Sequence record: OR538032.1
Direction: 5' to 3' (one strand)
DNA length: 64,000 bases
The notes under the pieces are model-generated. The model did no database searches. It worked only from the letters and a program-made list of their open reading frames with translations, and was not told the DNA's origin. Shown in pieces: positions 37,951 through 47,979 of this stretch. A program made the translations under genes and the position numbers. Each line of letters starts with the position of its first letter. Within the stretch, counting starts at the first letter, position 1.

Positions 37951-38001
37951 TTAGTAGAATTAGTAGTTTTAGTGAAGTTAGTAATATTAGGAGTATTAGA
38001 A
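37951..38001 (+). repeat. Six TTAG-headed units with exact 9-bp period
   Basis: TTAG at 37951, 37960, 37969, 37978, 37987, 37996. Confidence 0.85.
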
Positions 38002-38696
38002 TGAAGAAGCTCGTACTTGTAGCTGCCGCTGCTGTAGCTCTTGTTGGATGTGGTGATTTGCCACGTCTGGAAACTAAGACAGACAAGAAATTCACCACGG
38101 TTAATGCAGTTGTGAACAAAAAAGAGCGTGAAATGATTAACTACTGGATGGCAGATGCTGACGGTAGTAACTATCTTTACAACAAGCTTTGGACTGCTCT
38201 TGCTACTCGTAACAAATACGGTTCTAATGCTGTGCGTCGTTCAGATGATGAAGTCCCGTTCTGTGATGTCATTGTAGCCCTTGCTAAATCTGAAGAAGGT
38301 ATTCGAAGCACGTACGAGCGCACATTTAACAATCAGTGGCGAACTCAATACGGCATTAGTCTTAATCAGCAATGTGGCTATACTCCACCAGAAACACTCG
38401 AAGAGCAAGCAGAGCGCATTGAGCAACTTGAAATGCAAGCTGATTTGAAAAAGCGTGAGCAACAAGCACAGAGTATTGAAACGCTTGATGACGTTGCCGA
38501 CGCGACGACTGAGTTACTTGATCCGCATGAGTACGACTATCTGATCGAATCGGCACGCGAGTGTAATCGAGCCAAAACCAAATTGCTTGAACTAACGCAA
38601 GCAGGCAAACCTCTGACACAAGCTGACGGCTCAGATGCACGTAAGCTAATTATCGAATGCAAAATGCATAAACTTGAAGTTGAATTGAATAAGTGA
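38001..38696 (+). CDS. Lipoprotein, paralogue of 50544-51263
   Basis: Lipobox ALVG-C; EVPFCDVI, NQW..QYGI, CNRAK, KLEVELNK. Confidence 0.8.
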   Translation: MKKLVLVAAAAVALVGCGDLPRLETKTDKKFTTVNAVVNKKEREMINYWMADADGSNYLYNKLWTALATRNKYGSNAVRRSDDEVPFCDVIVALAKSEEGIRSTYERTFNNQWRTQYGISLNQQCGYTPPETLEEQAERIEQLEMQADLKKREQQAQSIETLDDVADATTELLDPHEYDYLIESARECNRAKTKLLELTQAGKPLTQADGSDARKLIIECKMHKLEVELNK

Positions 38697-38703
38697 GAAA
38701 AGC

Positions 38704-39486
38704 ATGTTGAGAACAAATATTGCGATTGAAGAACTGAAAATCCGAATGCATCCGTTCGATCAAGTTGCGAACGCAAACAACGACGATAGCTCAGTTCGCG
38801 ACTGGCGGCAAATCCCTGACGTTGCTAATGACAATATCCTGAAGAACTCGGTTCTGCCGTCGTGGGTAATTCGAGAGTTTCACTGGCGTGATATTTCATT
38901 CAATCAACCATCAATGGGTGATCTGCTCGTTGAGTACAAAACAGAAGCAGGTGAAATTGGTAAGTGCCAATCGCATTATCTCGGTGAACTTGATGATTGC
39001 AAGTTCTGGCGCCCTGACATTGTATCTTTGAATGCTCAGTTCATTGATTCAAAAGACGTTGATAAAGCCCTTGCCGAATTGCAAGCCGTTGATGTGTTTG
39101 ACGCCTCACAAGGATTCGCTGACGGTCGACCTGACCCGGTTAGTCACAATGAACACGGTATCACCGATGATGAGCTTGAAGCTGCAATCGTCGAAGCTGA
39201 AATGGCAGCGGCTGTGGATGCTTTAAAAGTTGAGTCGCAATCGTTGTTCGATCCAGATCATGTTTATTACATGAATGAAAAGTATTATATTATCGGTGAC
39301 GACCCGTTTGACGAAAATTACTGCTATGCGTTGAATGCTGCAAAATACCCACAGCGTATTGCAAAATCTCAAATCGTAACCGATGAGCAATACAAAGAAG
39401 CCGAAGTGTTGAAGAGTCAGTTCCCGCAGATGTGGACTGCTCAAGATTACGCAAAGCTTGCTAAGTTCATTCGCAGCAAAAAGTAG
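38704..39486 (+). CDS. Hypothetical acidic protein
   Basis: 260-aa ORF; no motif recognised. Confidence 0.7.
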   Translation: MLRTNIAIEELKIRMHPFDQVANANNDDSSVRDWRQIPDVANDNILKNSVLPSWVIREFHWRDISFNQPSMGDLLVEYKTEAGEIGKCQSHYLGELDDCKFWRPDIVSLNAQFIDSKDVDKALAELQAVDVFDASQGFADGRPDPVSHNEHGITDDELEAAIVEAEMAAAVDALKVESQSLFDPDHVYYMNEKYYIIGDDPFDENYCYALNAAKYPQRIAKSQIVTDEQYKEAEVLKSQFPQMWTAQDYAKLAKFIRSKK

Positions 39487-39491
39487 TTCCG

Positions 39492-39522
39492 ATGCGGGTT
39501 GTTACGACATCCCGCATAAATA
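39492..39522 (+). promoter_or_regulatory. Hairpin overlapping a T4 late-promoter-like CATAAATA
   Basis: ATGCGGG...CCCGCAT stem; CATAAATA at 39515-39522 (T4 late consensus TATAAATA). Confidence 0.45.
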
Positions 39523-39554
39523 GTTCTATATGGACTAACAAGGAAATTACGACA

Positions 39555-40085
39555 ATGCCAACTCCTACAACAGGTGCGATTTCAATCGGTACCGTTCGTG
39601 ATTATTTCAGTAGAACCGGCGCTGCTTCATTGTCTCAGTACTACAGAGGCGGCGGTATTGTTCCTGATATTACTGAAAACGCTCACGTACCAACTTCAGG
39701 CGCGATTAGCTTGAATGATTTGCGCGGTGTATATCGCTTGTCAACGTATACGACATCGTTTACGACAACATACAACACCACGGTTTCGACATCGAATACG
39801 ACTTCGCGTAGTACGTCAAGAAGTACAACTAGAAGTACTGCATACAATACAACTCGCTCGACTGCGTATACTACTACTTGGACAACTAGTCGAACTACGT
39901 CGGTGACTAAAGGTTCGTATTCGACATCATACACGACTTCTCGTGCTACATCACGTTCAACAGCATATAGCACGACACGTTCAACAGCTTATACGTCTAC
40001 GTGGACAACATCATGGACAACTACGTACAACACAACAATATCAACATCAAACACAACTTCACGAAGCACGCAAGTTGCAGTTTAA
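39555..40085 (+). CDS. Ser/Thr-rich repeat protein, probable fibre/needle or modification substrate
   Basis: RBS AAGGAA; start MPTPTT; two GAIS-type motifs; 28 tetrapeptide units around a TKGS turn. Confidence 0.8.
   Translation: MPTPTTGAISIGTVRDYFSRTGAASLSQYYRGGGIVPDITENAHVPTSGAISLNDLRGVYRLSTYTTSFTTTYNTTVSTSNTTSRSTSRSTTRSTAYNTTRSTAYTTTWTTSRTTSVTKGSYSTSYTTSRATSRSTAYSTTRSTAYTSTWTTSWTTTYNTTISTSNTTSRSTQVAV
39747..40082 (+). repeat. Coding tetrapeptide repeat (large residue + three mostly S/T), 14+14 units
   Basis: Y/F/W/R/V/I/N every fourth residue; arms share TTTYNTT[VI]STSNTTSRST and RSTAY.TTRSTAYT.TWTTS blocks. Confidence 0.9.
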
Positions 40086-40097
40086 CAAGGTTAAATT

Positions 40098-40316
40098 ATG
40101 AGCTACAATGAAGAACACGAGAACCGAATCAACGAGCTTGAGAACAAGGTTTCAAAGCTTGAGTCGATAATTGAAAATCTGGTTGAGTCAATGACTTCGA
40201 ACAGCGAAGCTATTATCGAACATATTGCATCACTTGAGACCGAGAGAGATTCGATTCTTGCATCATATGATGACAAACTTAATGAGATCGTGACCAAATA
40301 TGAACCCAAGCAATAG
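40098..40316 (+). CDS. Small coiled-coil protein
   Basis: Heptads INELENKVSKLESIIENL. Confidence 0.7.
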   Translation: MSYNEEHENRINELENKVSKLESIIENLVESMTSNSEAIIEHIASLETERDSILASYDDKLNEIVTKYEPKQ

Positions 40317-41154
40317 AGAAATGACTGGGTTCAATAACATTTCTCGCACCGGTAAGTTGAAATTACAAGCCGATGCAGACAACGTCCGTGCCATGTGTAT
40401 GGACGTTGTTCGTTTATTGAACTCCAAAAATATACCATCTAACTTCGACATCAATCACAATGACGGTGGTAACATCGGCGTGCATGAATGGGTGTCACAA
40501 ATCCGCTTCATTCACTTGAAATACATGAACGTTAATTTTCAAACGAAGATTTTCAAGCATGCCTATCACAACACTGAAAACGTCGTTGACTATTTTGACA
40601 CGTTCAAACATTCTGACAAATATCATCTTTCAGCGAAGCCTCGATTCTTAGAATATGAAAACGTCGTATTTCTATGCGGATCGAATGTACTTGAATTGGC
40701 AATTGACTTTGACAAGATTGATGCGTTGGTCGAACAATATCCTGATTTGGTGATTAAACCTCACCCGATTACGACGTTGTATTACATCAATATGCTTAAA
40801 TCTCGATATGGTTCAAAGCGAATTCTATCTCAGAAGATCAGTGGTGTTGATGTGCTTAAAGCTTCTAAACGTGTTTGGCTGCCTTCAACGTCTGAGTTCT
40901 GGTTCAGTGCTTTGAACTACGACAAAGAAATCGGGTTTATATCTAAAGATGGTTTCTGTGGAACATACACGTCAATCATCAACGCAGTGTGGGAATTGCA
41001 TGAAGAAACTGGTGATTCGCTGAAAGATATTGTGAATAAAATTATCTCGTCACCTTACTCAGGTCTTTATGGTAATATGACAGACTTTGAAGCGCATCAC
41101 GAGAAATACTGCAATGTGATTCTAGAACTCGGGGGCAATTTCGATAATGTATGA
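40300..41154 (+). CDS. GT-B fold glycosyltransferase-like (KpsS/sialyltransferase-type motifs)
   Basis: LVIKPHP followed by VLKASKRVWLPSTSEFWFSALNYDKEI. Confidence 0.6.
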   Translation: MNPSNREMTGFNNISRTGKLKLQADADNVRAMCMDVVRLLNSKNIPSNFDINHNDGGNIGVHEWVSQIRFIHLKYMNVNFQTKIFKHAYHNTENVVDYFDTFKHSDKYHLSAKPRFLEYENVVFLCGSNVLELAIDFDKIDALVEQYPDLVIKPHPITTLYYINMLKSRYGSKRILSQKISGVDVLKASKRVWLPSTSEFWFSALNYDKEIGFISKDGFCGTYTSIINAVWELHEETGDSLKDIVNKIISSPYSGLYGNMTDFEAHHEKYCNVILELGGNFDNV

Positions 41155-41779
41155 TTATGTAATTCACACGTCGATCAGTGACAAAAGTCAGTTAAACCAA
41201 CTTGCAATGTTTGTCGGGTCTTTCATCGAGACACACAAGAAAGGTCGCGTTGTCTGCGTGACTGATCTTGAACTTGATTTCACGATGCCTCGGCTGTCAT
41301 TTGAGAAAAAACTACCCGAAGAGTACGTTTTCATTTCAGTTGACAATCTATTTTTGCAAAAAACATACGGCGTGGTTAGCTACATTGATAGCGGCACTTG
41401 GCGATGTACTTGGCAAAAGAATGACCATGATGAGTTCGTTATTAAAAAGCATGGCGAAAGAAGCGGGTTGATTAACCCTGATATTGCGATTGCAAATTAC
41501 AATGTTTCGAGACATGGTGACCTCGACATGTATTACAACGCGCTTCGTTACATTGAGAACGCCATCACGATCAACTGCAAAGACTTTGCTCCTGCTGCTG
41601 AGAATAAAATCAACAGCTTTTACACGCTTGTATTTCCATGGGAGATTTATTTTCACGTTATGATCACTTACCAAGAGTATATTGATTCTGAATACGTTGA
41701 GCGAGTTCGCGCTAACTGTCATAAGTTCGCACACTCGGTTTATTACAGAAAATCAGGGTTGTTGCGTGATGGGTTATGA
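41147..41779 (+). CDS. Possible degenerate GT-A (GT8-like) glycosyltransferase
   Basis: AMFVGSFIETH...VVCVTD and YVFISVDNLF (imperfect DxD). Confidence 0.35.
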   Translation: MYDYVIHTSISDKSQLNQLAMFVGSFIETHKKGRVVCVTDLELDFTMPRLSFEKKLPEEYVFISVDNLFLQKTYGVVSYIDSGTWRCTWQKNDHDEFVIKKHGERSGLINPDIAIANYNVSRHGDLDMYYNALRYIENAITINCKDFAPAAENKINSFYTLVFPWEIYFHVMITYQEYIDSEYVERVRANCHKFAHSVYYRKSGLLRDGL

Positions 41780-42452
41780 TGAGATAATTCTAGTATCTGG
41801 GCTTGATAGTTTAGTTCTATACGAATTTCTTGAACGAAAGCCACACCCTGTTTACTTTAAATGGGGTTTTGCTATCGACGAACTTGAAATGGCTGCTTTG
41901 CCTGAAGAAACAACTATCATAGAAATGCCAGAGATTTTGCATTTGAAACATGATCCGTATGAGTTCAAGACGCCACGAAATCCCGATTTAATTGGTCGGA
42001 ATACGTTGATGTTTAACTCAGTTTTCCATGCATTTAGACCAAACGTAATTTATCGCGGGATGTTGAAAGGTGATGATTTCTATTACGACGCATCGCCTAC
42101 GCATTCGGATGAAATCGCAGCTATGTGGTCGAAAATGCTGAATAAAGATTGTCGAATTGAACAACCGTTCAAAGACAAAACGAAACGTGACATAATGCAA
42201 ATGGCGGTTGAATACGGGATTGACGCGAATTCATTGCAGCATTGTTACAATCGAGAACATAACTGTGGTCGATGTAGCAAGTGTGTAGATGCACATGTTA
42301 ATTCTATGTATACCGACAATCCAGACATCATGTGGCTGAAACGAATAGTTAATGACTCGGGTATGGCAGCATTGGCTAATCACATGTTTGGTGTTGATAC
42401 CGTTGACAGAATCAAGGAATTTCTAGATGAATTTGATCGAACAGACCGCTGA
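41769..42452 (+). CDS. QueC-like PP-loop ATPase
   Basis: VSGLDS, GRNTLMF, YYDAS, EQPF...TKRDI, CYNREHNCGRCSKC; start moved to ATG 41769. Confidence 0.75.
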   Translation: MGYDEIILVSGLDSLVLYEFLERKPHPVYFKWGFAIDELEMAALPEETTIIEMPEILHLKHDPYEFKTPRNPDLIGRNTLMFNSVFHAFRPNVIYRGMLKGDDFYYDASPTHSDEIAAMWSKMLNKDCRIEQPFKDKTKRDIMQMAVEYGIDANSLQHCYNREHNCGRCSKCVDAHVNSMYTDNPDIMWLKRIVNDSGMAALANHMFGVDTVDRIKEFLDEFDRTDR

Positions 42453-43320
42453 TAAATTCGAGCATAGTTACCGAGAAGACGTTCAAGGCGTACAGTGGTA
42501 TTTCGGTAGTCGAACGCATGATTTTTATCTGTATGGAATAGACTCTCTTATTGATAAAGTCAAAGACTACGATTTTATTGAAATCAAGCATGTTCAAGAG
42601 GGTACGCTGGTTAAACGAGGCGAAGCTGCGGTCACGATTACGATTACAGATCATAGTCGTATCGCATATGGGAACATGATTGAAACATTGTTGTACAATG
42701 AGTTGTGGTATTCGAGCACGGTCGGTACGATTTTACACCGTTGCCTTGATGTGTTGCATGAAAACGGCTATGACGCTCGGTCAGCATACCCTCAAATCGG
42801 ACGAGCGAGTTCAACGCCAGAACAATCAGCTAAAGCAAGGGATATGTTCGCTCGTATATTTTATCAATCATCGAATGAGAAAATACCCGTTGCGATGCAC
42901 AGTGATATTCTAATCAACGGTGAGGAATATTGCATGGAGCATTATAACGGCATCATGATTGATACTTTCGATAAGCAAGCTTGCATTGACTTGATCAACA
43001 AGAAAGACTTTCGAGGGACTGTGATGGTTGACTCTCAGCCAATAATTGAAACAATTGAGAAAGTTCTAGCTGAAACAAAATGCTTTGTTGCACAAGCTGA
43101 AAGTGTTACACTCGATGAGTGGATAGAGATAGTGCGACATTTTAAAGGTAATAATCGAATTTTCTACGGGATTGGTAGCTTTGCATTTAGCAATATATCA
43201 CGAGACACATTTGGGTTGATTTACAAAGTGTGTGCAGTTAAGAGAAACGACAATTGGATCGGTGTTTCAAAGATGACGACAGGTAAACAAACATCGGCTG
43301 GTTATAAGGTTATAGGTTAG
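42427..43320 (+). CDS. Compact divergent NAMPT/NadV-like phosphoribosyltransferase
   Basis: Colinear motifs with NadV at 46486: EGTLV, IETLL...LWYSSTVGT, MHS, IDTFD, YGIG...SRDT, SKM. Confidence 0.75.
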   Translation: MNLIEQTADKFEHSYREDVQGVQWYFGSRTHDFYLYGIDSLIDKVKDYDFIEIKHVQEGTLVKRGEAAVTITITDHSRIAYGNMIETLLYNELWYSSTVGTILHRCLDVLHENGYDARSAYPQIGRASSTPEQSAKARDMFARIFYQSSNEKIPVAMHSDILINGEEYCMEHYNGIMIDTFDKQACIDLINKKDFRGTVMVDSQPIIETIEKVLAETKCFVAQAESVTLDEWIEIVRHFKGNNRIFYGIGSFAFSNISRDTFGLIYKVCAVKRNDNWIGVSKMTTGKQTSAGYKVIG

Positions 43321-43322
43321 TT

Positions 43323-44312
43323 ATGAATTATTGTATATCGCCATTTACATCGCCGTCTATTACACCAGACGGTTTTAAAATTTGCACCATGCCGGGTCAG
43401 AAAGTATACCCTGATATTTCATTCTGGAATAGTGATGAAGTGATCAAGATTCGCGAACAGATTATCGCTGGTGAAATACCTGAATCGTGTAAGACATGTC
43501 GTAGTATGCGTGACGGGTTGATTGTGTCAAAAGAAAAACCAACTGATACTCATGTTGACTTGAATTTCAAAGCTCTTTACATTGCGCGGTCGAACAAGTG
43601 TGAATATGCTTGTGAAATGTGCAGTTCATCAATCTCACATAGCTATGACAAGAAATACAATGACGGTAAGTTGGGGATTATCGAGAATGACTTTGATGTT
43701 ATTCCGTACCTGCACGAAACACAAGCCGTTGCTATTTCGGGCGGGAACCCTGTCATTGACAAAAAGGTTGCAGAGATTCTTGAGAATCTAGACCCTGACG
43801 TGGTAAAACATTTCATCATTACCTCAAATGGTACAGTCTTTCCAGACAGATTCTTGAATGCAATTAAGCGATTGAAATGCAACGCGACTATGATATTCTC
43901 TATGGACGGACCGAAAGAGTTTAATGAAGTGGTTCGATCTGGTGCGAAGCAAGAGAGAATCTATCGCACCATTAATCGAGTTCTTGACGAGATTGAAGAT
44001 TACCCAAACTTGCATGTGGCAATTGAATACACTTTCACGAATAAGTCAATTCATCACTACGTTGATTTGTATGATGAAATGCTCTTCGAGATCAACCCGA
44101 AGCATTTGAAAAACAACAAAGTTAATGTGATTGCGAATATGTGTACATACCCGCATCACCTTAGCGTTACAACTGTTCCCAAATCCGTCATTGATGACAT
44201 ATTGTTCAATCAGTTGCCATATTTGAGAAAGCAACCCAGCCCATTGTCAAATCAATTCAAACTTGGTTATGATAAGTTTTTGACTCAGTATCACAACAGC
44301 GTGATTATGTGA
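43323..44312 (+). CDS. Radical SAM protein with N-terminal twitch domain
   Basis: YCISPF..C..CKTC N-terminus; CEYACEMC; SGGNP; TSNGT; SMDG. Confidence 0.85.
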   Translation: MNYCISPFTSPSITPDGFKICTMPGQKVYPDISFWNSDEVIKIREQIIAGEIPESCKTCRSMRDGLIVSKEKPTDTHVDLNFKALYIARSNKCEYACEMCSSSISHSYDKKYNDGKLGIIENDFDVIPYLHETQAVAISGGNPVIDKKVAEILENLDPDVVKHFIITSNGTVFPDRFLNAIKRLKCNATMIFSMDGPKEFNEVVRSGAKQERIYRTINRVLDEIEDYPNLHVAIEYTFTNKSIHHYVDLYDEMLFEINPKHLKNNKVNVIANMCTYPHHLSVTTVPKSVIDDILFNQLPYLRKQPSPLSNQFKLGYDKFLTQYHNSVIM

Positions 44313-45429
44313 TCAGATCATACGCTTTGATGTGTGAGTAAAACTCTGGACACGCAGACGATAAATTAGTTTTCGTCTTCGTGTCTATTCTCTTGTTAAG
44401 CACAAAGAATTCAGGGTTGAATTTACAAACACTGTGTTTCAGAGTAAGACATTCAGCAACGTGCTTGAATGGTCTAGACAAATCCTCACGCCCATCTTTT
44501 AAATACGCTTCTTCTTTCACTTTGAATCTTGATAATAGCTGGTCTCGAAATGCAACTGGAATGTTGTAAATTGAGTATGGATTATCAGGCTCACCAACGA
44601 CATGTACAGACAGACGTACACGTTCACCATCATAAAGCGAATCAAAATCTGAAACCAGTGTTTCAAGATGTTCAAGAGTCACGTTTGACACGGTCGCAGT
44701 GATAACTACATCAAAGTGTTCCTTGATGATTTCAATGTTTGATTTGACTTTCTTGATGTCTGCAAACAATCGAATATAATCTTGGTATTCTCGTAGACCG
44801 TCGATTGATACGAACACCGTTGATGCATTAGCTTCTTTAAGCGATTTGATGAGATCTGAGCCATCGGCTAACACTAGTGATGAACCATTCGTGAAAATAT
44901 TCACCGTGCCTTTAATGTCGCCTACGCTGCGAAGAACTTCAGGAGCATTTGACGAGCGGGTAATTTCACCACCTAGAATTGTCAATGATGAAAGCCCTTT
45001 GCTGATTGTGTTGATTGTCGTACTCAAATCATTGAATCGAGTACTTGAATCTTCTTCATTAAACAATCTAGCTTTCAAGTCTGATAATTTGCTATAGCAG
45101 TAACGACAAGCGTGGTTACATTCATTACTAGGGAATACTTGTAGCCAGCGAACTGAATCGGCAGGCATGATTGGTGAAACTTCAGAATCGTGTTCGGTTA
45201 GGCGCTGTGGATCATTATCAGTGATGCACATTTGACATGCCTTTGATAGCTTGCTCATGTCGTGGTTTAGCATTGCTTCACGATAAGCGACAAGCTTTTC
45301 ATCATTCCAAGCGTCTGCTAGTGTTTTTTCATCAGTAAACCATTCATAATCAGCCGAACAGCAAAACGTAATTTGATTGTTTGCTCGTGTGATGAACTGC
45401 TTGAACGGCATATAACATAGTGGTTTCAT
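44305..45429 (-). CDS. Radical SAM protein with N-terminal twitch domain
   Basis: LCYMPF..FCC..CQMC; CNHACRYC; LGGE; FTNGS; SIDG. Confidence 0.85.
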   Translation of the reverse strand: MKPLCYMPFKQFITRANNQITFCCSADYEWFTDEKTLADAWNDEKLVAYREAMLNHDMSKLSKACQMCITDNDPQRLTEHDSEVSPIMPADSVRWLQVFPSNECNHACRYCYSKLSDLKARLFNEEDSSTRFNDLSTTINTISKGLSSLTILGGEITRSSNAPEVLRSVGDIKGTVNIFTNGSSLVLADGSDLIKSLKEANASTVFVSIDGLREYQDYIRLFADIKKVKSNIEIIKEHFDVVITATVSNVTLEHLETLVSDFDSLYDGERVRLSVHVVGEPDNPYSIYNIPVAFRDQLLSRFKVKEEAYLKDGREDLSRPFKHVAECLTLKHSVCKFNPEFFVLNKRIDTKTKTNLSSACPEFYSHIKAYDLIT

Positions 45430-45439
45430 GCTTCTGTCC

Positions 45440-46012
45440 TTAGTTAAAAATGCTACTTGTATATATAGCGGTCTTCAGGGCATTGAAATGATCGTCAACT
45501 CTATTCACGTGTATGCATTCAATGTCAAATCTTTCTTGGATTTCTCGGATGTTGTCTAGCGAGTCGTCGATGAAGTACTTCACATCATGCAGTTCACACA
45601 GCTTCTCGACATACTTTGCCTTCGAGTCGAAGTACTCAATCGAAATCACTTCACTTATCATTCCTGGGAATAACGCATTTAGATTATGCACGCGATTTGA
45701 CCATGAAGTTCTACTCATGCTGAACTTGGTTAGTGCAATGATGTTATAACGGTCTGAGAGTTCGCGTAACGCATCGTAAGCGTCTTCATATGCTGGTATG
45801 TACTTTGCACACTCATGTTCATTGTATGCCCCTATAAGCTTTCCTAGTTGCATGTCGCTCACGTTAATAAATAAAGAGCGTGCATCGGTATCAGTATTTG
45901 AACCGTTGATATTCAAATTATCAAGCATGCCTAATTGCATCATGAAGAATGGCAAGTTGGCTTTCCAGTTAAGCAAAACCCCGTCTACATCTATGATGAT
46001 AGTCTTTTTCAT
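45440..46012 (-). CDS. HAD phosphatase, 5'(3')-nucleotidase-like
   Basis: IDVDGVLL, ALTK, K, FIDDSLDN; RBS GAGG. Confidence 0.8.
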   Translation of the reverse strand: MKKTIIIDVDGVLLNWKANLPFFMMQLGMLDNLNINGSNTDTDARSLFINVSDMQLGKLIGAYNEHECAKYIPAYEDAYDALRELSDRYNIIALTKFSMSRTSWSNRVHNLNALFPGMISEVISIEYFDSKAKYVEKLCELHDVKYFIDDSLDNIREIQERFDIECIHVNRVDDHFNALKTAIYTSSIFN

Positions 46013-46485: not shown

Positions 46486-47979
46486 ATGCTAAATCTTACT
46501 CAAAATATCGCAATCGCAACTGACAGCTACAAAGTTTCACACTGGTCTCAATTCCCTCGTGGTCTAGAGTACAGCCAATATTACGTCGAAAGCCGGGGTG
46601 GTAAGTTCGACAAAATTATGGTCGATGGTATGGCATACATGTGTCGTATTCTCGAAAAAGGTGTTTCGATGAACGATGTCAAGCGTGCGAAACGTCTGTT
46701 CAAAAAGCACTTCGGTTCTGAAGTCTTCAATGACAAGGGTTGGGACATCATCGTTAACGAACTGAAAGGCAAACTGCCTATTAAGATTCGTGCGGTCAAA
46801 GAAGGTACTGTAGTACCAGTTAAACACCCTATCTTGACGATTGAGAACACAGATCCGCGTTTTGGTTGGCTGCCTGGCTATCTTGAAACGTTCATCTTGC
46901 GTGCTCTTTGGTACCCGACAACTGTAGCAACGATCTCGTTCGAAGTGAAGAAAATCATTCGCCAATTCATGAAGAAGACGGTTGATGATGAACGCATTGC
47001 AGAACAAGAGCCGTTCAAACTTCACGACTTTGGTTCTCGTGGTGTATCAAGTGGCGAATCAGCGGCTATCGGCGGCTCTGCTCACTTGAAAAACTTCTTG
47101 GGTACTGACACTGTAGAAGCACTTGTTGCAGTTGAAGAACTTTACGCTGAAGATGTTGAAGATTTCATTGCGGGATTCTCTATCCCTGCACGTGAACACT
47201 CAACAACTACAATCTACAAAGAAGTTGGTGAAGATCAAGCATTCTTGAACTCTATCGAGCAATGGGGTGCGGCATTATACGCTTGTGTAATGGACAGCTA
47301 CGACTACGAAGCAGCAATGAATCGTGTCTCGACTGGTCGCTTCAAAGAGCTAATCATCAGCAAAGGCGGTACGTTTGTTGCTCGTCCTGACTCTGGTGTG
47401 CCTGTAGATGTAGTAATGAAAGGTCTTGAGATTCTTGGTAAAAACGTTGGTTATACAATCAACAGCAAGGGTTACAAAGTATTGCACCCTAGCTACCGCA
47501 TCATTCAAGGCGACGGCGTGAACATCGAAGAAATTCGTCGAATTCTGTCTTACATGGAAAGTAAAGGCTGGTCGGCAGAAAACATTGCATTTGGCATGGG
47601 TGGTGGTTTGCTTCAGCAACTCGACCGTGATACTCAACGCTTTGCAATGAAAATGTCAGCGGCAATCATCAACGGCGAATACGTTAGCGTGTTCAAAATG
47701 CCGAAGACTGACCCGACAAAAGCATCAAAAGCAGGTTTCTTAGATTTGATTGCAGTCGATGCAGACAATCCGAACCCAGCGGCTCGTGGTTACGTGACGT
47801 TCTCTTCTGAAGATTACGACAATCGCGTACACCCGAAAAGCGTGATGCAGACAATCTTTGAAGACGGTGTAACAGTTGCTGACTTCTCACTCGAAGAAGC
47901 TCGTAAACTGTCTGACGTACAAGCTGATTTCCTGAACGAAGGTGAATGGAAAATCGCGAAAAAGATTCAAACTGCGTAA
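46486..47979 (+). CDS. nadV: Nicotinamide phosphoribosyltransferase
   Basis: ATDSYKVSH, LHDFGSRG, GTDT, PAREHS, RPDSG, QGDGV, GMGGGLLQ, RDT. Confidence 0.95.
   Translation: MLNLTQNIAIATDSYKVSHWSQFPRGLEYSQYYVESRGGKFDKIMVDGMAYMCRILEKGVSMNDVKRAKRLFKKHFGSEVFNDKGWDIIVNELKGKLPIKIRAVKEGTVVPVKHPILTIENTDPRFGWLPGYLETFILRALWYPTTVATISFEVKKIIRQFMKKTVDDERIAEQEPFKLHDFGSRGVSSGESAAIGGSAHLKNFLGTDTVEALVAVEELYAEDVEDFIAGFSIPAREHSTTTIYKEVGEDQAFLNSIEQWGAALYACVMDSYDYEAAMNRVSTGRFKELIISKGGTFVARPDSGVPVDVVMKGLEILGKNVGYTINSKGYKVLHPSYRIIQGDGVNIEEIRRILSYMESKGWSAENIAFGMGGGLLQQLDRDTQRFAMKMSAAIINGEYVSVFKMPKTDPTKASKAGFLDLIAVDADNPNPAARGYVTFSSEDYDNRVHPKSVMQTIFEDGVTVADFSLEEARKLSDVQADFLNEGEWKIAKKIQTA

Follow-up and report, generated by a model that had tools for sequence, protein, structure and literature searches.

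What does a protein do with a C-terminal region rich in serine and threonine in which every fourth residue is large? The question arises from a gene in a window of 64,000 nucleotides from sequence record OR538032.1 (the window being the whole stretch of DNA that was analysed). The window belongs to the KVP40-like Vibrio phage PG216: positions 38000-42500 are identical to PG216 at matching coordinates, and 96-98% identical to KVP40, phi-pp2 and relatives. The gene, taken from the list of open reading frames (ORFs), spans 39555..40085 on the + strand, stop codon included, and encodes a 176-residue homologue of KVP40.0254 (pp2_249 in phi-pp2), annotated in the records as hypothetical or, in some (phi-pp2, PVA8, QD01), as a 'cell wall mannoprotein'. 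The feature studied here is its C-terminal 112 residues. The reading that we favour, with a confidence somewhat above even, is that these residues form a ribbon that would be made late, belongs probably to the virion, is kept together by cation-aromatic pairs without covalent links, and probably bears O-linked glycans. The ribbon gene is the visible part of a large, unnamed phage family.

An earlier interpretation made from the letters alone (the sequence-only reading) had described two strings of 14 units, each opening with a large residue, on either side of a T-K-G-S turn at 39906-39917. A phase table reproduces this arrangement. Positions 39747-40082 encode exactly 112 residues, from Y65 to V176 in the 176-residue protein, and comprise, all on the + strand, arm 1 (39747..39905, 14 four-residue units, Y65 to V117), the turn (39906..39917), whose fold centre was placed at K119-G120 by a blind fold-centre scan, and arm 2 (39918..40082, 14 units, Y122 to V176). 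The autocorrelation of residues other than Ser and Thr is r = 0.50, 0.53 and 0.44 at lags 4, 8 and 12, and negative at lags 2, 6 and 10, and Ser or Thr account for 73 of 114 residues. Each unit reads large residue, small polar, Thr, small polar, and outside the turn no unit departs from this placing of Thr, two residues beyond the large one, a regularity that the sequence-only reading had not mentioned; in an extended strand one face would therefore carry large/Thr/large/Thr and the other small polar residues only.

When the arms are folded at K-G, 9 of 9 Arg face Tyr, Trp or Phe and there are no Arg/Arg pairs, and the 14 pairs listed in the sequence-only reading were recomputed exactly. The permutation test of Arg-aromatic pairing that it had proposed, in which arm 2 is shuffled, gave P = 0.0011 at fixed register and 0.003 when the best of seven registers was taken. 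In the blind scan, which covered every possible fold centre, the best register fell at K119-G120; when the labels R, K, Y, W and F were permuted over the positions that they occupy, with the best centre used each time, 61 of 5000 shuffles reached the observed score. The gapped fold-back stem joins residues 67-116 with 123-172 of 176. The pattern is real and beyond chance in this single sequence, and far stronger with relatives added. The cation-pi 'ladder' of the sequence-only reading holds as cation-aromatic pairing across the arms but is interrupted, since Thr-Thr pairs come in turn between the large ones on that face. Two old direct-repeat blocks make up the DNA of the arms, in the mirrored order A-B, turn, B-A (39740-39815 with 39995-40070, and 39837-39886 with 39960-40009); these repeats share 60-74% DNA identity, and each block pairs with its own copy, so that each is self-complementary in the cation-aromatic code.

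The relatives that we compared come from phage records QD01, VS2, D479, K575, D484 and F86 and from metagenome proteins. All those read consist of the N-terminal module followed by two arms with a Gly/Lys turn at the centre, which in QD01 and VS2 is the same as in the window protein. The pattern of large residues varies among lineages and complementarity is retained: D479 sets a run of six Arg opposite a Trp/Tyr run, K575 four Arg opposite three Trp and one Tyr, and the metagenome protein P0030 a Tyr run opposite alternating Arg and Lys. Gapped fold-back alignments of 20 proteins gave zero like-with-like pairs (cation/cation or aromatic/aromatic) in the stem, and 4 to 37 cation-aromatic pairs per relative. 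Best-centre shuffle tests reached the observed score in 2/5000 (D479), 1/5000 (K575) and 9/5000 (F86) trials, and gapped alignment at the known centre gave z >= 2 in 14 of 15 proteins, with the antiparallel score above the parallel one in 15 of 15. Starting where the N-terminal module ends, the stem reaches to 0-8 residues short of the C-terminus in 19 of the 20 proteins (20 residues short in P0001), and QD01 is shorter than PG216 by one four-residue unit in both arms. At closer range, the ribbon genes of PG216 and KVP40 differ at 14 nucleotides, 10 of them silent, and none of the 4 amino-acid changes falls at a large position; among near-identical phages substitutions are confined to the small positions, apart from one Ile/Val change.

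The sequence-only reading had looked to homologues for covariation in this register, and it is found there, since diverged relatives retain Arg/aromatic complementarity with differing patterns. What stands of its antiparallel arm pairing is therefore the cation-aromatic code, the equal arms and the turn, kept in relatives, while the beta-hairpin itself is inferred from covariation and not seen, because the AlphaFold2 model described below is of low confidence; as a fold-back ribbon, the arrangement is well supported by covariation. In three lineages, D479, K575/D484 and F86 (L008:3001-3513, L009:3001-3534, L011:1501-2058), the turn has a Cys to either side, a pair that the KVP40 group lacks and that could be a disulfide clamp or a metal site.

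Some relatives are considerably larger. P0022, P0030, P0068 and P0088 have a globular insert of 74-89 residues between the arms. An ORF of 518 residues in contig L019 has a 68-residue insert and arms of ~210 residues with 37 cation-aromatic pairs, and one of 733 residues in L022 has a 93-residue insert and arms of ~312 residues with 34 such pairs, like-with-like pairs being 0 in both. In IMG/VR, 29 complete Ser/Thr-rich ORFs beside the gene for the partner protein described below show the fold-back, with arms of up to ~430 residues, up to 53 cation-aromatic pairs and z > 7 in four; many such ORFs exceed 1300 residues, since they run past the 4-kb flank. The rule of zero mismatches is relaxed in this set: cation-cation pairs, numbering 1 to 3, occur in 5 of the 29, and a few aromatic-aromatic pairs, at most 9, in most of them. 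Two equal Ser/Thr-rich arms with a turn or tip domain are thus found in the window protein, 19 relatives and 29 IMG/VR proteins, with arms from 25 to ~430 residues each. By comparison with these relatives, the arms would form a stalk, which in some of them carries a tip domain. In L045:2246-3361, L054:1348-2319 and L080:40-1101 there are two consecutive Ser/Thr-rich ORFs, the first of which ends in a Gly run and then a Hint/intein-like domain (Hint_2 E = 6.6e-4, L054 only); this domain may mean self-processing or ligation of the arms.

The ribbon gene is linked to a second gene at 40300..41154 on the + strand, which encodes a 284-residue homologue of KVP40.0256 that AlphaFold2 and Foldseek indicate to be similar to glycosyltransferases of the GT-B fold, and which we call the partner. 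It adjoins the ribbon gene in D479 (L008), K575 (L009), L013, L014, L016, L017 and L018, and in L019, L020 and L022, which were reached through the partner, a Ser/Thr-rich two-armed protein is again encoded by the gene upstream. In the phage collection the partner occurs in the same 35 Vibrio records as the N-terminal module and in 9 Caulobacter phage records; in the Caulobacter phages Lullwater and Cr30 the gene order is tail-fibre-like gene, Thr/Tyr-rich gene, partner. IMG/VR yielded 120 relatives of the partner gene, and a Ser/Thr-rich ORF lies directly upstream on the same strand in 72 of 80 loci with the partner; 7 of the remaining 8 are without upstream sequence, which makes 72 of 73 informative contigs. 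Neighbours in relatives include gp13-like, connector, tail and Peptidase_S74 genes, and some ribbon genes follow tail-fibre genes. Sugar genes are also found: L072 has a sugar-nucleotide 4,6-dehydratase and a sugar C-methyltransferase beside the pair, and L019 a family-1 glycosyltransferase. The suggestion, already made from the sequence, that the Ser/Thr residues are glycosylation acceptors gains strong contextual support from this linkage, the GT-B-like gene being an almost obligate neighbour.

The partner has a weak GT52 match in Pfam (E = 6e-4) and no significant PDB sequence or profile match, the top non-significant profile match being KpsC. Its AlphaFold2 model, built on a 45-sequence alignment, has a predicted local distance difference test score (pLDDT) of 85.8 and a predicted template modelling (TM) score of 0.85. 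In the Foldseek search with this model, chains of WbbB fill the first six places (E from 7.8e-5 to 9e-4, with probability 0.99 to 1.0 and TM 0.44-0.49), the best with E = 7.8e-5, probability 1.0 and TM 0.47; other GT-B enzymes come next, and the first named match in BFVD is a 'capsule polysaccharide biosynthesis protein' (E = 2e-3). The motifs K-x-H-P and S-E are invariant, K153, H155 and P156 in all 45 sequences, and the strand before the place equivalent to the nucleophile ends in an invariant G-x-N. In the literature, a His-Pro motif is common to the transferases of beta-linked Kdo (3-deoxy-D-manno-octulosonate) and of sialic acid activated by cytidine monophosphate (CMP), and a Q-x-x-x-D nucleophile motif has been defined (PMC10148158). 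Of the features of retaining beta-Kdo glycosyltransferases, the partner shows, in its model, the modified GT-B fold, as well as the His of the His-Pro motif, and by sequence it lacks the nucleophile motif. Compared with WbbB (GT99) and KpsC (GT107) (PMC9587256, PMC10148158), it is alike in that the model matches WbbB best and the invariant His-Pro is kept, and unlike in its 284 residues, its presumed acceptor, which would be a protein and not a glycan, and the absence of Q-x-x-x-D by sequence. Since that motif was not found, we call the partner GT-B-like or glycosyltransferase-like and not a member of GT99 or GT107. A terminator-like stem-loop with a 14-bp stem lies at 40378-40410, inside the partner coding sequence.

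The repeat makes up just the C-terminal half of a two-module protein, which the sequence-only reading had missed, as it had missed that the start of the annotated 197-residue ORF is too early. The N-terminal module (39555..39740, + strand, ~62 residues) is kept in all relatives and has two S-G-x-I-S motifs around Y-Y-R-G-G-G. Its profile matches 5970 cluster representatives at E <= 0.001, with many different C-terminal domains; in the phage collection it occurs in 35 Vibrio records and in 9 records of other hosts, the latter with other C-termini. At the site of the ribbon gene, phage VH7D has gp152 (L015:2474-3007), of 177 residues, with three S-G-x-I-S-type motifs and an unrelated C-terminal domain, followed by a PagP-like gene.

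The start of the gene bears on its expression. A mechanical ORF of 197 residues begins at 39492, and the true start is the ATG at 39555, 21 codons later. Four observations lead to this start: phi-pp2 is annotated from that Met; a Shine-Dalgarno-like AAGGAA (39540..39545, + strand), read from the window and conserved in the upstream alignment, lies 9 nucleotides before that ATG; a profile of 250 N-terminal modules aligns its first position to that Met; and a late-promoter-like octamer (39515..39522, + strand) falls within the longer ORF. The extension 39492-39554 of the annotated KVP40/PG216 ORF thus contains the late-promoter-like motif and the ribosome-binding site. The octamer was read from the window, 33 nucleotides before the start codon, and matches 7 of 8 positions of the T4-type late-promoter consensus. 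Upstream of the gene, QD01, VS2, K575, F86 and the distant L014 have retained its core, and the heptamer at the core, as read off the window, has 5 copies in 64 kb against 11.6 expected, 4 of the 5 on the + strand. The putative late-promoter function fits a virion part.

Taken together, these results suggest the following arrangement. The two arms would pair as a two-stranded antiparallel beta ribbon ~17 nm long, as covariation indicates, with cross-strand cation-aromatic pairs alternating with Thr-Thr on one face and small hydroxyl residues on the other. The ribbon may serve as a stalk, like the proposed stalks of the larger relatives, whose base the N-terminal module would anchor on the virion. 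The GT-B-like protein encoded downstream (40300-41154) would O-glycosylate the Ser/Thr residues of the ribbon, as linkage and fold suggest, perhaps with a CMP-activated acidic sugar as donor, and the radical S-adenosylmethionine (SAM) enzymes of the cassette described below may tailor the sugar or modify the protein. From the genomic context, both a place in the virion and glycosylation seem probable.

Several results weigh against this arrangement. AlphaFold2 on the ribbon protein (15-sequence alignment) gave a pLDDT of 49 and a four-strand layout, not one long hairpin, although the low-confidence model does have long strands and a hairpin at K-G. Foldseek on this model returned nothing significant, with pore-form hairpins appearing at E >= 0.1 on geometry only. 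Complementarity in P0001, the sole exception among the 15, was not significant in the shuffle test. In strictly periodic relatives, where Lys and Phe alternate at spacings of 6 and 4 residues, antiparallel complementarity is partly automatic, so that the aperiodic members carry the weight of the argument. The ribbon gene of KVP40-like phages is not beside the tail-fibre genes (gene 37). Glycosylation is proposed here from gene linkage and the partner fold, and for the partner the TM-score to WbbB is just 0.47 and Q-x-x-x-D is absent from the invariant columns, by sequence. Finally, the ribbon ORF is missing from the annotation used in the virion proteome of phage 6E35.1a (PMC12028318), which therefore could not have detected the protein. 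An intact ribbon ORF is likewise uncalled in the records of K575, D484 and F86 (L009:2969-3746, L010:1469-2246, L011:1469-2282) and in re-annotated 6E35.1a, its place being taken by short spurious ORFs in other frames or on the other strand, so that the protein is invisible to proteomics using those annotations.

Database searches gave little further guidance. The ribbon protein matched no family with known function in Pfam (none at E <= 1), NCBIfam or PHROGs, sequence and profile searches of the PDB returned nothing for it or for the tip domain, and literature searches on the gene identifiers, threonine-rich phage fibres and the mannoprotein label found no description of the protein. Other readings were examined and set aside. 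The arms of the window protein have no Gly or Pro turn residues and a period of 4, which speaks against a beta-solenoid; neither face is hydrophobic, which speaks against a membrane-inserting hairpin; the region has one 16-nucleotide imperfect inverted repeat only, too little for an explanation at the nucleic-acid level; and tentaclins were checked and are unrelated.

The four-strand layout raises the question whether the arms pair between chains, as a dimer with swapped domains, as a trimeric shaft or as an amyloid-like stack, in line with the needle suggested in the sequence-only reading; we consider this unlikely. The covariation would be identical if arm 1 paired with arm 2 of a different chain, most phage fibres known so far are trimeric, a two-stranded ribbon standing alone over 17 to 140 nm seems fragile, and the Thr-Thr gaps on the large-residue face could take an interdigitating second ribbon; AlphaFold2, too, favoured a four-strand sheet. 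However, arm 1 cannot pair with itself, since the Arg runs would face Arg in D479, the parallel alignment always scores below the antiparallel one, and the turn-flanking Cys pair and the single compact tip domains fit an intramolecular fold-back.

The low AlphaFold2 confidence also agrees with a very different view, in which the arms are a disordered, mucin-like Ser/Thr-rich spacer whose complementarity comes from duplicated self-complementary blocks, in a protein that may not be in the virion at all. The sequence is of low complexity (Ser/Thr 73/114), old direct repeats of 60-74% DNA identity relate the arms, and the neighbouring genes have been described as an anti-defence island (PMC12028318). 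The mannoprotein label (yeast Tir-type) came from automatic annotation and reflects composition only; homology to Tir/Srp1 is absent, no Pfam or NCBIfam family being found and the sole match being a below-cut-off 'serine-rich protein'. Disorder does not, however, predict equal arms across 25 to 430 residues with matched indels. The zero like-with-like pairs in 20 close relatives, the in-phase invariant Thr and the Cys pairs at the turn also speak against it, as do the conservation of large positions and variation of small ones in close relatives and the location of relatives in structural modules. We regard such a spacer as highly improbable.

The remaining genes of the locus bear on the third alternative. 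In PG216 the ribbon gene opens a block that ends at 46012 and is wholly absent from VH7D. Beyond the partner, the rest of this co-inherited cassette (41147..46012, mixed strands) encodes, by Pfam and NCBIfam matches, a 210-residue unknown, a QueC-like PP-loop protein and a short NAPRTase-like protein, followed by two twitch-type radical SAM proteins (43323-44312, + strand; 44305-45429, - strand) and a HAD-like protein (45440-46012, - strand). Both radical SAM proteins match the twitch subfamily best, with 117 and 127 bits against a cut-off of 170, and score 20-45 bits with peptide-maturase models whose cut-offs are 300-650.

The facing Arg-Tyr/Trp pairs might accordingly be sites of radical SAM cross-links, as the sequence-only reading had offered as its alternative, with a stapled product in which non-covalent pairing mainly templates the chemistry. 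Two radical SAM genes do lie 3.2-5.3 kb downstream, and their matches are to the twitch subfamily and then to several peptide maturases, all below cut-off. An orthologue of 43323-44312 is present in exactly the 35 Vibrio phage records that bear the ribbon gene, and one of 45-50% identity stands between the Ser/Thr-rich gene and the partner in 6 of 80 IMG/VR loci. A radical SAM neighbour also goes with a ribbon composition shifted from Lys and Phe towards Arg, Tyr and Trp (85% Arg and 93% Tyr+Trp, compared with 56% Arg and 36% Phe where no such gene is near), a contrast that rests on about four lineages. Yet of the 72 IMG/VR loci that have both genes of the pair, ~66 lack a CxxxCxxC protein at distances up to 4 kb and their arms are still complementary, and BLASTP shows no similarity between the radical SAM genes near L014 and those of PG216. 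The corresponding site of K566 (L027:3042-14010) has no ribbon gene and encodes a lipoprotein along with four radical SAM and three glycosyltransferase-like proteins (two GT8, one GT4-like), which suggests sugar chemistry instead. The substrate would, moreover, be a 176-residue two-module protein, not a short leader-core peptide. The radical SAM association is not general to the ribbon family, and cross-linking stays in consideration since several lineages combine the system with a radical SAM gene; we hold it to be improbable. A combined scheme, which would make these proteins a new class of biological fibre and in which a single-chain fold-back ribbon, from tens of nanometres to over a hundred in length, is zipped by cation-aromatic pairs, coated with sugar by its dedicated transferase and, in the Vibrio phage lineage, also stapled at Arg-Tyr/Arg-Trp by the twitch radical SAM enzymes, appears to us distinctly improbable.

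The non-covalent, probably glycosylated ribbon has counterparts in several known systems. Designed beta-hairpins of 12-20 residues (tryptophan zippers and related model peptides) are stabilised by cross-strand aromatic or cation-pi pairs. They are alike in having large side chains on one face, which the K-G two-residue turn puts at non-hydrogen-bonded positions, and a cation facing an aromatic ring as the stabilising principle; they are unlike in that the ribbon has arms of 53 residues (to ~430), is natural, alternates with Thr-Thr and would serve as a phage stalk. The serine-rich repeat glycoproteins of Gram-positive bacteria, with GtfA/GtfB, also combine a Ser/Thr-rich stalk and a binding domain with an adjacent GT-B-type transferase, and structures 5e9t and 7vfm of that system are among the weaker fold matches of the partner. 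In contrast to them, the phage protein has no secretion signal or cell-wall anchor and has a four-residue code and two complementary arms, and the nearest fold of its partner is a beta-Kdo transferase, not GtfA. Gp38-type tail-fibre adhesins of T-even phages (PF05268) resemble the ribbon protein in being small and in joining an attachment part at the N-terminus to a distal part that varies, and relatives with its N-terminal module have, in place of the ribbon, the glycine-rich domain PF05268. They differ in that the ribbon gene in KVP40-like phages does not adjoin gene 37; Pfam gives no PF05268 match for the window protein, and its N-terminal module differs from that of Gp38, since the PF05268 match in P0025 covers the C-terminal part only. 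Lastly, radical SAM cross-linked peptides (ryptides, streptide, xenorceptides) share Arg/Lys beside Tyr/Trp and radical SAM genes nearby, whereas here there is no short leader-core precursor, the maturase scores are below every cut-off and the linkage is not family-wide.

To our knowledge, solved phage fibres are trimeric beta helices, beta spirals or coiled coils. If the proposed structure is right, the ribbon would be a shaft architecture new among them, and a natural, very long counterpart of chemists' cation-pi hairpin designs. Because the pairing code can be read from sequence, such stalks should be recognisable directly in metagenomes; they appear common in marine phages, and gene callers often miss their genes. 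The near-obligate transferase would point to widespread glycosylation of attachment organelles in phages of Gram-negative hosts, which would bear on phage-host surface contact and on phage recognition.

Further small genes recur near the pair. Between the ribbon gene and the partner, 40098..40316 (+ strand) encodes a coiled-coil-like protein of 72 residues, a homologue of KVP40.0255 (PHROG 5851, weak coiled-coil Pfam matches only). Its homologues follow the ribbon gene in D479, K575 and L014, with a similar 51-residue ORF in L016, and a coiled-coil-like ORF of 50-70 residues recurs beside the ribbon or fibre gene (40098-40316; L016:1927-2082; L026:2193-2393) and might be a small assembly chaperone. 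A DUF7936 protein, for which a literature search returned no description, recurs beside the partner in marine contigs (L016:900-1289, L017:2355-2756, L019:5888-6253, L022:5897-6334). Within the cassette, the QueC-like PP-loop protein (41766-42452) scores 29 bits against a QueC equivalog cut-off of 150, and it probably has another substrate, since the true preQ0 gene set is located elsewhere in the related phage 6E35.1a (PMC12028318). The NAPRTase-like protein (42427-43320, 297 residues) is a paralogue whose full-length counterpart, an NAMPT-type enzyme, is encoded 3 kb away at 46486-47979.

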